Below are positions 437-31,243 of a stretch of DNA of 64,000 nt, piece after piece. Numbering within the stretch: position 1 is the first letter of the stretch; every line of letters begins with the position of its first letter. The notes beneath the pieces are model-generated. The model saw only the letters and a list, made by a program, of their open reading frames with translations, did no database searches and was not told the DNA's origin. Made by a program: the position numbers and the translations under genes. Source of the stretch: Blastocystis sp. Blastoise (taxonomy: Eukaryota > Protista > Bigyra: Opalinata); the NCBI GenBank assembly GCA_039096225.1, contig JBBPEB010000006.1, positions 124,001-188,000 on the forward strand. Reading direction: 5' to 3'.

Positions 437-487
437 GAGATAAATCAGCCTATACAGTAGAATTGTTAAAAAGTCAGACAATACAGT
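437..487 (+). repeat. Left terminal inverted repeat (51 bp)
   Basis: GAGATAAATCAGCCTATACAGTAGAATTGTTAAAAAGTCAGACAATACAGT. Contains an internal ATACAGT direct repeat (452-458, 481-487). Starts GAGATAA like maize Mu TIRs. Confidence 0.95.
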
Positions 488-1951
488 CGTTTCCAGAGGG
501 TCCTATGACCCGCGGTATTTTTAACATAATGGCGACTAGAATATAATACAAATATGTTGTAAAATTCCCAGTCAAGAAACTATATGTGTTTTCTACTAAT
601 AATTAATTTTTGCCATATTCGACCTATTTGTTTAAATTTGACTTAAATGGATAGACGGGATATTGACAGAATAGATAAGGAAGTGGAAAATGAGGATTTT
701 ACTCAATATGTTCAACACATTCCTTCCGTCACACTATGGACATTTTGTGTTTTTTTGACCCTATTTCCCGTAAGAGAAACAACAAAATGACTGGGATTTT
801 TTAATCAAAAATACGTTGGCCTAAACTCGAGAAAAGAGTGTCCGCCAACTTGTCAAGTTTCTCTCTTTTTGACGAGAAAAACTTAAAAATAACTCTACAA
901 AATATATTGTTTATTTATATAATCATAGACATTCTAAATATTGACTATTTTACAGTGTTTTATGATTTAAAATGACTGTTTAAAACCAAAAAGACTTTAA
1001 TTTTTTCTCTGAAGTCTATAATTCAGAATGGATTACATGAGTGAGAAGTTTTTAAAATTTGTGTATTCTCTGAGTGATATATTATCATTTCAATCATTCT
1101 CGTCAAGTCCTTTTACAATATAAACCATTATACAGCCTAAATCAACACACACCTAAAAATTTCTTCTTTTTGATTTCCCAAGGAAAAAACAATAAAATGA
1201 CTTGACTTTTTTATTCATAATTTTTTAGCCTAAAGACGACAGCATTCTTTTAGCCAACTACCCTAGAAAGTCAAAACAATTAAAAATTCAAAAAAGAAAA
1301 GTAAAACAGAAGCTCTTGTTTTTGTTTATTGATTATCGTCAATAAACCTGTTTTTAAAAATATGACTTTAGAATATCATTCAGGACTTGATTTATAGTTC
1401 AGGGTATCGTTTTAAGGTTTAAAATAGCTTTTTTAAGAGAATTCATAATTATGTCCTAAACCAAGAGGAGTTGTGCGTTTTTATCATCTCTGTTGTTAGA
1501 CATACTTATACACAACATACTCAGCTTACAAAATTGTTTTTCTTGCTTGTTGTGATTTTCACTCATTTTTGAATATTTGATTTTTAGTTTCAAAAGTGGT
1601 ATAAAGTGTCTATACATGCCTGTAAGAATCGATTTTAATACTATAAAGTCAAAAATATTAAAAAAAAGTGACAGCGAAAAAAGGAGGGAAAATATACTTT
1701 TTTGAATTTCTTGATATTCCCGCAAAAATGATTTTTCTTTTAAGACCTGAAGACACCCATACGCTATTGAGCCTATTGACTTAGAAAATATTTCATTTGT
1801 TACATATTTTTTTTATTTTTATTCTATTTTTATTTGCCTTTATTTTTAAAAATAGAAGCTCATTTTAACTTCAGACTGTTCCCTTGTATGTATATTGCTA
1901 TTTTTTATTCTTTACCCATATTAACATTCTCCCATTCTCTAGCATGTATAG

Positions 1952-2308
1952 GTTCCTGCTCGTCCGTGGTTATAAGAGTCCTCTTCAGTCCATGTCAACA
2001 ACGTCTATGATGTCAAACTGTTTTCAAAGTATATATGTATTTATTTATTTTTATAATTATCTCTTATCTTTTTATTTTTTATATTGCTGTAATATTATAT
2101 GATAAAATACTTATCGTATATTCATTCTATCTATTATTAACTTTCTTTTTTTTTTCTTGAATTAGAATTCTAATTCATTTTATTATTTATTTTCATTATT
2201 TTTATATTTTTATTTATTATTATTTATTTATTTAGGTTGTTTTCTACTGTTTCTGTTGGTTATCTTTCCCTATGACTCAACATCACCAAATTCATTTTTT
2301 TCTATTAG
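1952..2308 (+). pseudogene. Degenerate mini-exon cassette (2 short exons) of the cargo family
   Basis: Higher-GC islands 1952-2028 and 2236-2308, each bounded by TAG| and |GTAT in AT-only flanks. The first reads GSCSSVV... then hits a stop. Confidence 0.4.
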
Positions 2309-2349
2309 GTATGTTTATTTATTTATTTATTTATTTATTTATTTATTAT

Positions 2350-29300: not shown

Positions 29301-31050
29301 ATATAGTAAATAATGATAATAAATATATACAAGTTGAACATATTTACATCAAGAAAAGCAAAATAATTTTATGAATCCAACAGGTAATAAAGTATATCCT
29401 AAAATATGAGTATATTTGATTATTTGTAATAAAAAGTCTATATATATATATATCGATTATTAAATAAATACAAGTTATAGAGTTATATATATACTATAAG
29501 AAAAGTATAAAAAATTGAATATAAAACAAGATAAATAGATAGAATAATATACATACATAATATAATATTATGAATGAACAAGCTAGAAGATAACTTTATT
29601 AATAATAGAGATAGAACGAGCACATACTATATACAACAAGACTAGTATATATATTATGTAATAAAAATTATATATAACATCATAAAAAGTATATAGGAAT
29701 ATATATATATATATAAACTATATACATCAATATAAAGTTGAAAGATACACCAGTCTCAATAATTCTAGAATATGACATTACTATATATATAAATGATAAT
29801 AAATATACTAAAAATATTCATATATAAATAGTAATCATTTAGTATAAATTGTATATAGAAATAGAAAGTATAATAGAAAATATATAATATCTATATAATA
29901 ATATAATATATCATGCATATTTATTTAAAACAAGAATTAGTACATAGAATAATATTAATATATAGCATATACAATCATTATAGGATCAATATACATAAAA
30001 GAACATATATAATATTATATATATATACAATTATTTTCCCCTGATAGAAAGAAATAACAAAAATTCATCATTCTATATATATACAATAAATATATAAGTA
30101 TACATATATATATATAATATATACACATATATCTAAATACACAATATATATAAATATACAATATATATAAATATACAATATATATAAATATAATACATAC
30201 TTCAAATAAACATATAAATGAATTCATTCGATCATTAATACACTTTTTCTATATATAATAGTAATTAACAATATAATAAAATAATAATATATAGAATAAC
30301 AATATACATAATAAAGCATATATAAATATTATATGTAGTATTAATAACAATAATCGACTAGGAAAATATGTTAAAATAATAATTCTATAATATATATATC
30401 AAATAATAAGCATATATAACAACAATAAGAATAAATAAATGAGAAAAGAATCATAATATACCTTTTTACTAAAATTTTTATTATTTTTATTTTGAATATA
30501 TAATCATCCATAACTCTCCAATAATATCAGTTAATCATCTAATAATTCACATAATAGTACTATACATCATCTAGGACTAAACGATAGTGTTAAATATTAA
30601 AAACAATAATAACTCCTGAACATCAATTAACTGCCATTTCTATACAACTAGAGAAGATATATTGATAATAATGTTATTATATACTACTCATACCATAATG
30701 GGATTGAACAAGACAAAACAAACCTCTAGATAACTCCACATTCTGTAATTGTAATTCTCCATCAATATTTCTTTAATATGATTTCCTATATACTATTTAG
30801 ATATAATACATACTTATATAATAATATACATCAATAATATAACCCAAAGACTATTTTTGACAGCCAAATGTCGACCATTATGATAAAAGTCTAATATGAC
30901 TTGCTTATTCATCTAACCACTTCAACATAACTATACAAGGCTATATTAACAATATCAGATCTATATAAGCATACCTAATTGGCAATCCCCAATTACTTTC
31001 ACGAACCTCACCTAAATCTACTCTATATATGTCATCATATGTATAATAAG
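26400..31050 (-). pseudogene. Heavily decayed multi-exon minus-strand cargo gene or transcript
   Basis: Minus-strand TATAG acceptors and GTAT donors. Protein-like fragments near 30680-31025 (VDLGEVRESNWGLPI, LKWLDE*ASHIRLLS*W, NIDGELQLQNVELSRGLF) are broken by stops. Confidence 0.35.
28400..29060. repeat. AATAACAACTATATAT-type minisatellite
   Basis: Many imperfect ~13-19-bp units visible directly. Confidence 0.85.
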
Positions 31051-31192
31051 GCATAATATATATACATACTCAATATTCAATCCATATATATATATATAAT
31101 ACCCCTAGCAGTTATTATAAAATATATGTTATCCCCATAATTATTTTATACACCTAGTCATACTCGGAGACGTTGGGATACTCCCATACCCT

Positions 31193-31243
31193 ACTGTATT
31201 GTCTGACTTTTTAACAATTCTACTGTATAGGCTGATTTATCTC
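31193..31243 (-). repeat. Right terminal inverted repeat (51 bp)
   Basis: Perfect reverse complement of 437-487. Confidence 0.95.

Follow-up and report, generated by a model that had tools for sequence, protein, structure and literature searches.

A 31-kb Mutator-like interval in Blastocystis, probably an ordinary element with three nested insertions

How did a Mutator-like element (MULE) of Blastocystis come to span almost 31 kb? The question is raised by contig JBBPEB010000006.1 of Blastocystis sp. 'Blastoise' (assembly GCA_039096225.1). The window analyzed here is the whole stretch of 64,000 nt from position 124001 to 188000 on the forward strand of this contig, and positions given below without a locus name refer to it. 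The interval 437-31243 is bounded by perfect terminal inverted repeats (TIRs), and the initial annotation regarded it as a ~31-kb giant MULE with a transposase and a large cargo. The comparison with other copies of the same family does not support such a giant element. Those copies are 11.5-12.3 kb long, and the extra DNA in the window copy consists of three segments, 19.3 kb in total. It is highly likely, with a probability of about 0.9, that the interval is an ordinary 11.5-12.3-kb MULE which was enlarged by three nested mobile elements and not by cargo. The attractive reading of a 31-kb cargo-carrying MULE is thus to be replaced with that of a normal family member which became a landing pad for other elements. 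The MULE itself is genuine and recently active, and it represents a new family for Blastocystis.

Five copies and three empty sites

The ends of the window copy, each flanked by a target site duplication (TSD), are as follows.

427-436: left copy of the 10-bp TSD, TTCTTCTTTT, identical to 31244-31253; the TSDs of the other copies differ
437-487, plus strand: left 51-bp TIR, the exact reverse complement of 31193-31243, identical across five copies
31193-31243, minus strand: right 51-bp TIR, the exact reverse complement of 437-487, identical across five copies
31244-31253: right copy of the 10-bp TSD, TTCTTCTTTT; the ATG of a WD40 host gene is at 31313

The inverted match between both ends stops abruptly at nucleotide 52. 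The 51-mer, with up to three mismatches allowed, was found at just two sites in the 64 kb and did not turn up in any of 100 shuffles. In a dust-filtered self-BLAST, the TIR pair is the sole 100%-identical repeat pair in the window. The direct repeat outside the ends is a T-rich decamer, and it is considered a true TSD because each of the four other copies bears a different flanking duplication. The TIRs start with G, and the transposase shows the MULE domain (PF10551, E 6e-16). Beyond the right end, host genes for WD40, RCC1 and bromodomain/PHD proteins were observed. The initial annotation had described a MULE with G-starting, perfectly inverted 51-bp repeats, 10-bp direct repeats abutting them as TSD, and host genes resuming directly after the element, and all these descriptions hold. 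Farther to the right, an intron-less open reading frame (ORF) of 1837 aa at 52008-57521 (minus strand) contains FYRN/FYRC, DDT, bromodomain and PHD domains. As an ordinary host gene for a chromatin protein, it confirms the ordinary gene content past the element.

The family loci compared were the window copy and L001, L003, L005 and L006, chosen via a protein cluster at 90% identity (six members at five loci). L004 and L011 are the window's own MULE locus and cover its left end only; the right end was read in the window. L004, on contig JBBPEB010000006.1, matches 161-22368 of the window at 100% identity. The five copies are listed below with their positions, lengths and flanking duplications.

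Window copy: 437-31243, 30807 bp, TTCTTCTTTT (10 bp)
L001 copy: 9791-21275, 11485 bp, ATTTATTTT (9 bp)
L003 copy: 9791-21277, 11487 bp, CTCAAAAAAA (10 bp)
L005 copy: 9791-22089, 12299 bp, TTTAAAAATA (10 bp)
L006 copy: 8771-21071, 12301 bp, TCCAAAACTCAT (12 bp)

All five copies have a perfect 51-bp TIR at both ends, and the flanks differ among the five loci, which are on four contigs. Because the copies have different flanks and their own 9-12-bp duplications, they constitute a real and recently mobile MULE family, as had been proposed from the window copy. Paired TIRs with different TSDs had also been expected elsewhere in the assembly. Four such pairs are present, with duplications of 9-12 bp, but their spacing is only 11.5-12.3 kb. 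The range in the literature is 8-11 bp for the TSDs and 14-500 bp for the TIRs of MULEs (PMC6446971). The 51-bp TIRs and the TSDs of four copies (10, 9, 10 and 10 bp) fit these ranges, and the flanking repeat of L006 is 12 bp. Substitutions between the window copy and L001 amount to 0.07-0.15% outside an AT-rich tandem-repeat zone at ~27.7-29.9 kb where the alignment is unreliable. L005 and L006 differ by one substitution in ~11 kb, and the remaining pairs by 1-2.5% substitutions.

The four other copies align to the window in four collinear blocks (437-731, 9563-12930, 19372-20849 and 24817-31243). They join 731 to 9564, 12930 to 19373 and 20849 to 24840 directly, and these junctions were compared base by base with L001. 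The window copy is 30.8 kb long because the three extra segments, designated inserts A, B and C, occupy sites that are empty in the 11.5-12.3-kb copies. The empty state is considered ancestral because neither L001 (~0.1% divergent from the window copy) nor the more distant L003, L005 and L006 (1-2.5%) contain the inserts. A, B and C are considered insertions rather than deletions elsewhere because the empty state is common to four copies, because exon 1 of the transposase gene is intact there, and because A occurs independently. B, a Helitron, and C, a hairpin-ended segment, arrived after the ~0.1% split of the two MULE copies.

Three nested elements

Insert A, closest to the left end, has the following features and further copies.

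732-9563: insert A, an 8832-bp non-coding DNA transposon; the site is empty in L001, L003, L005 and L006
732-746 and 9549-9563: TIRs of A, 15 bp, perfect, starting CACTATGG
729-731 and 9564-9566: TSD of A, TCA, single in the empty sites
9331-9539: subterminal tandem repeats with 73-bp units
L007 7028-15862, L008 7029-15864, L009 7031-15862 and L010 7030-15862: further full-length copies, 99.9% identical, with perfect TIRs
L012 1-8947: fifth further copy, 97.8% identical, with the left end cut by the contig end

Including that of the window, at least six copies of A are present, and the flanks of L007-L010 are all different. Two copies have a 3-bp flanking duplication, and three have one of 2 bp. 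As a large non-autonomous element, A has multiplied very recently in a burst. A carries TC-rich microsatellites, and the ORFs there, for example 2272-6197, are translations of these. An exact look-up found the same protein as a 134-aa ORF annotated within A on six contigs. The scan of the ORFs of A revealed neither a transposase ORF nor any Pfam match.

A therefore represents a non-autonomous DNA transposon in its own right that was active very recently, and its ends resemble those of the CACTA/EnSpm-Mirage-Chapaev (CMC) superfamily. It shares with CMC elements the termini beginning with CACTA, the short TIR, the subterminal repeats and the 3-bp TSD. It differs from them in having no transposase and in the 2-bp duplications of some copies. 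A third difference comes from a decayed relative of A at ~2969-6966 of L008. The right 510 nt of this relative are 85% identical to A, its right TIR is perfect, and its left end has degenerated. An ORF within the relative (4618-5433, minus strand) weakly matches piggyBac/IS4-type DDE transposases (PF13843, E 2.4e-5). When this ORF was searched against PDB sequences and NCBIfam, no match was returned. It is possible that the ORF represents the autonomous partner of A; the typical TTAA target of piggyBac was not seen. The superfamily of A is left open because the decayed relative adjoins a transposase-like ORF of the piggyBac/IS4 type, not of the CMC type.

Insert B is in the last intron of the transposase gene.

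12931-19372, minus strand: insert B, a 6442-bp non-autonomous Helitron, with junctions defined against the empty L001 site
12941-12977: 3' hairpin of B, GC-rich, with a folding free energy of -19 kcal/mol (z -5.3), a stability that none of 200 shuffles reached

Read on the minus strand, B starts with 5'-TC and ends with CTAG-3', and it is inserted between A and T of the host sequence without TSD. The hairpin stops 10 nt short of the 3' terminus. These ends, the GC-rich hairpin 10 nt from the 3' end and the A/T insertion without TSD are shared with non-autonomous Helitrons. Thus, the 6.4-kb Helitron proposed inside the MULE proved to be real, at 12931-19372. Unlike autonomous Helitrons, B has no gene for Rep/helicase: no such ORF was found in it by the ORF and Pfam scan. 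Gene calls within B are multi-exon and encode 143 and 99 aa, and the large ORF at 16725-17228 is the translation of a TC- or TTC-rich microsatellite. Self-BLAST revealed weak repeats within B at 13737-14089, 17954-18306 and 18455-18741. Searches for further copies of B and C covered loci totalling ~250 kb of the Blastoise genome, and no second copy of B was found in them.

Insert C lies past the stop codon of the transposase gene.

20850-24839: insert C, ~4 kb, unclassified and non-coding; the four other copies have the empty site
20850-20886: terminal hairpin of C, 37 nt, according to the computed fold
24817-24839: last 23 nt of C, imperfectly repeating the left flank (20828-20849), exactly at the junction

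Like B, C sits between A and T of the host sequence. The hairpin end recurs at 6940-6976 of L002 with one mismatch, 256 nt from the stop codon of a tyrosine-recombinase gene. This gene (7232-8338, minus strand) matches Phage_integrase with E 6e-5, and the R, HxxR and Y motifs are visible. Among the loci examined, the only recurring part of C is its first 48 nt, found in L002, and a search for a recombinase remnant in C found none. The hairpin end is 577 bp past the stop codon of the window MULE and 126 bp past an unrelated MULE gene in L002.

The better lead for the classification of C may be a Crypton-like element, with a second Helitron-like family as the alternative. Like Cryptons, C has no TIRs and no clean TSD, the junction repeat is imperfect and att-like, and one end recurs beside a tyrosine-recombinase gene. 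In contrast to Cryptons, C encodes no recombinase; the link is one shared 37-nt end, and the A/T insertion fits Helitrons as well. A more specific possibility, which we regard as rather unlikely, is that C is a non-autonomous Crypton-like element that integrates in an att-like, site-specific manner just downstream of MULE transposase genes. If this were true, the specific target of the transposon C would be another family of transposons. The region 5480-18743 of L002 (JBBPEB010000020.1) is a transposon nest, in which the tyrosine-recombinase gene accompanies the MULE genes P0013, P0002 and P0012 of other families.

Transposase gene, non-coding tail and alternative explanations

The main ORF of the window copy (10161-12368, 735 aa) shows the domains PF10551 (MULE), PF00872 (Transposase_mut, E 6e-10) and SWIM. 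P0001/P0003, from intact copies, is the full multi-exon model of 892 aa, and it maps to the window as exons that are parted by A and B. Multi-exon gene models were searched one exon at a time.

647-731, plus strand: 5' part of exon 1, with the ATG at 647; P0001 aa 1-28 correspond to 647-730 at 100%, and the exon is broken within codon 29
9567-9606, plus strand: last 5 nt of exon 1, followed by a 35-nt intron (9572-9606); tblastn of P0001 aa 31-147
9607-9999, plus strand: exon 2, with a 42-nt intron; N-terminal region resembling a zinc finger (Cys-x4-Cys...His-x-His); tblastn of P0001 aa 31-147
10125-12345, plus strand: main exon, with the MULE DDE domain and SWIM zinc finger, holding the 735-aa ORF; Pfam and P0001 exon map
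12346-20080, plus strand: last intron, GT...AG, phase 2; its 11-bp tandem arrays (12348-12930 and 19373-19983) are split by B
20081-20276, plus strand: last exon, 64 aa with a basic C-terminus, and stop codon; P0001 aa 829-892 correspond to 20082-20273 at 100%

In an alignment of 16 MULE transposases, D369, D492, E588, C513/H516 and the Cys/His residues of SWIM are invariant or nearly so. The last intron comprises ~1.3-2.1 kb of 11-bp tandem repeat in the other copies, and it is stretched to 7.7 kb here by the Helitron. The available annotation of the window copy is P0004 only (676 aa), which begins at Met160 and runs into the intron. The transposase had been described as intact. This holds for the 735-aa ORF, which keeps the D/D/E residues, the CxxH and SWIM, but not for the gene: exon 1 is split at codon 29 by A, and the last intron is stretched by B. 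The catalytic ORF is thus intact and the whole gene disrupted, and judging from the gene structure, the autonomy of the window copy is doubtful. Mobilization in trans by L001, L003 or L005 is possible because both TIRs of the window copy are perfect.

At 11326-11482, the hexamer TATTAC is repeated 26 times within the open transposase ORF. The annotation removes 114 nt (11316-11429) of this array as an intron, and the frame is open throughout. An open main exon of 740-757 codons is found in the window copy, L001, L003 and L005, whereas that of L006 is cut to 649 codons. The L006 copy differs from L005 by one substitution and small indels, and its annotation consists of two genes (P0005 and P0007). 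L006 is a freshly disabled MULE copy.

The 3' region of the MULE backbone and a repeat found in it occupy the following positions.

24840-31192: AT-rich non-coding 3' region, 6.4 kb, with tandem repeats and a tRNA-like module (26196-26409), 95-97% identical to L001, L003, L005 and L006
13050-13212 and 17284-17490: tRNA-like modules in B
26196-26409: tRNA-like module in the backbone, present in all copies
L002 4636-4817: tRNA-like module at another locus

The 3' region contains no domain-bearing ORFs, and the annotation of the other loci shows no genes in it. From the complete list of stop-to-stop ORFs in 437-31243 with 60 codons or more, the 24 that are not of low complexity were scanned against Pfam. 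No Pfam domain was found in any non-transposase ORF among them, and no captured host genes or gene fragments were detected between the TIRs. Rfam at the gathering threshold and ARAGORN found no RNA family and no tRNA gene in the window. The tRNA-like module is a dispersed repeat of ~70 nt with hairpins resembling the D-, anticodon- and T-arms, without acceptor stem, and with AT-rich simple-repeat flanks. It may be a repeat similar to short interspersed elements (SINEs). Neither the large cargo nor the repeated cargo module of the initial annotation was recovered. Instead of the cargo there are three transposons with their own ends, with no Pfam-domain ORFs besides the transposase, and instead of the module there is the short tRNA-like repeat, twice in the Helitron and once in the backbone of every copy.

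These results bear on the idea that a ~31-kb MULE moved as one unit with its transposase and a large cargo. The perfect outer TIRs and TSD are compatible with it, and there is no proof that the nested inserts came after the last transposition. However, no second copy is so built: the loci compared cover the whole 90% cluster, and the four besides the window hold 11.5-12.3-kb elements. The supposed cargo is three transposons with their own ends and no captured genes, exon 1 is broken by A, and a sister copy at ~0.1% divergence has none of the inserts. We consider this idea improbable. From a single copy, movement of the composite as a unit can be neither affirmed nor denied, and there is no sign of it. 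Still less probable is an ancestral long form, from which the 11.5-kb copies would be deletion derivatives that multiplied later. Deletion derivatives of MULEs are common, and the imperfect 23-nt repeat beside the junction of C could be cited in its favor. But three precise deletions would be needed, restoring a single TCA, an intact A/T site and an intact coding exon 1, while the short form encodes the complete 892-aa protein. The independent occurrence of A elsewhere with other flanks effectively refutes this scenario. An assembly artefact, in which repeats were misjoined in a collapsed or chimeric region, has an equally negligible chance. Tandem and dispersed repeats are abundant in the region, but all junctions are biologically exact (a TSD or an A/T site), and the MULE halves around each insert are in register and 97-99.9% identical to the other copies.

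Four points weigh against an ordinary MULE with three later insertions. There is a single composite copy, so the inserts were possibly present at its last transposition. Three insertions in one copy, compared with none in four, are an uneven and unexplained distribution. The copy numbers of B and C come from the ~250 kb examined and are not genome-wide. The loss of function is read from the gene structure alone, and an N-terminally shortened protein or long-range splicing is conceivable.

The history of the interval as an ordinary MULE with nested insertions may be outlined as follows. The family is an autonomous cut-and-paste MULE whose normal form of 11.5-12.3 kb comprises the TIRs, the 892-aa transposase gene and the 6.4-kb AT-rich non-coding 3' region. 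The transposase would bind the TIRs and integrate the element via staggered cuts of ~9-10 bp, mostly 70-300 bp from gene starts. The window copy was inserted ~70 bp upstream of the WD40 gene, and then struck by A in exon 1, by B in the last intron and by C past the stop codon, although the order of these events is conjectural. The three insertions tripled its length and probably ended the production of full-length transposase. With its intact ends, the window copy could at most be mobilized in trans by intact sister copies.

Relatives and comparison with known systems

The positions of the copies relative to genes are similar. The distance from the right TIR to the start of the neighboring gene is as follows.

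Window: TIR end at 31243, gene start at 31313
L003: TIR end at 21277, gene start at 21476
L005: TIR end at 22089, gene start at 22174
L006: TIR end at 21071, gene start at 21143

The insertions are intergenic and near gene starts. These four of the five copies are followed by a gene co-oriented with the transposase, with ~70-200 bp between the right TIR and its ATG. At the other end of the element, the left TIR of L001, L005 and L006 precedes a gene start on the opposite strand by ~250-290 bp. This distribution suggests that MULE insertions favor promoter regions. The first 295 bp, which include the TIR, the presumed promoter and the start of exon 1 (437-731 in the window), are the same in all five copies. 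Their identity despite the interior divergence of 1-2.5% suggests that the 5' end is under constraint or subject to gene conversion.

An exhaustive HMMER search with the transposase found 1130 relatives (E <=0.001). Those with more than 32% identity are Blastocystis proteins only, and the best named matches outside Blastocystis are plant MuDR/SWIM-type proteins. A word-based protein search returned Blastocystis paralogues alone, the nearest being hypothetical proteins of Blastoise, and other MULEs were reached by the HMMER search. The scan of metagenomes with 30 nt of the MULE TIR gave no match. Further MULE families of the Blastoise genome are represented by P0002, P0008 and P0011-P0013. The TIR of the P0002 family is ~80% identical (36/45 nt) to the TIR studied here. 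The right TIR of the related MULE family (family 2) is not within locus L002. The P0011 family, which is outside the window, is 31% identical to the present family. This second MULE family appears currently active because the same 853-aa protein is found on seven contigs.

The GC content of tortoise-associated Blastocystis genomes is 21-23%, their intergenic regions are long, their introns are variable, and transposable elements make up 5.6-7.5%; the transposon content of this lineage has been published as a percentage only (PMC10690189). Stramenopile MULE groups from diatoms and Phytophthora have been described by Dupeyron et al. 2019 (PMC6446971). The literature search found no description of MULEs or Helitrons in Blastocystis. 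The present analysis gives the first anatomical description that we found of an active Blastocystis MULE family, with its TIRs, TSDs, gene model and preference for gene starts. At least two kinds of DNA transposons, the MULE and the 8.8-kb CACTA-ended element (99.9% identity), have been mobile very recently in the tortoise-associated lineage. With its perfect ends and intact copies, the MULE family is a candidate for transposition studies in this protist.

Among the known systems, Pack-MULEs are non-autonomous MULEs with captured host gene fragments. The window element is similar to them in that MULE ends surround much non-transposase DNA. It differs in that no host fragments were detected, the extra DNA belongs to other transposons, each with ends of its own, and the element has a transposase gene. 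The family also resembles autonomous MuDR-type MULEs with a C-terminal SWIM domain, such as the plant MuDR/Jittery-like elements and the stramenopile groups. Both have a PF10551/PF00872 DDE domain with SWIM, TIRs, TSDs of 9-10 bp and insertions near the 5' ends of genes. In contrast to MuDR-type MULEs, the Blastocystis family shows at most 32% identity to proteins outside Blastocystis, its 11.5-kb length includes a 6.4-kb non-coding tail, its last intron is an 11-bp tandem array, and the flanking repeat of one copy is 12 bp.

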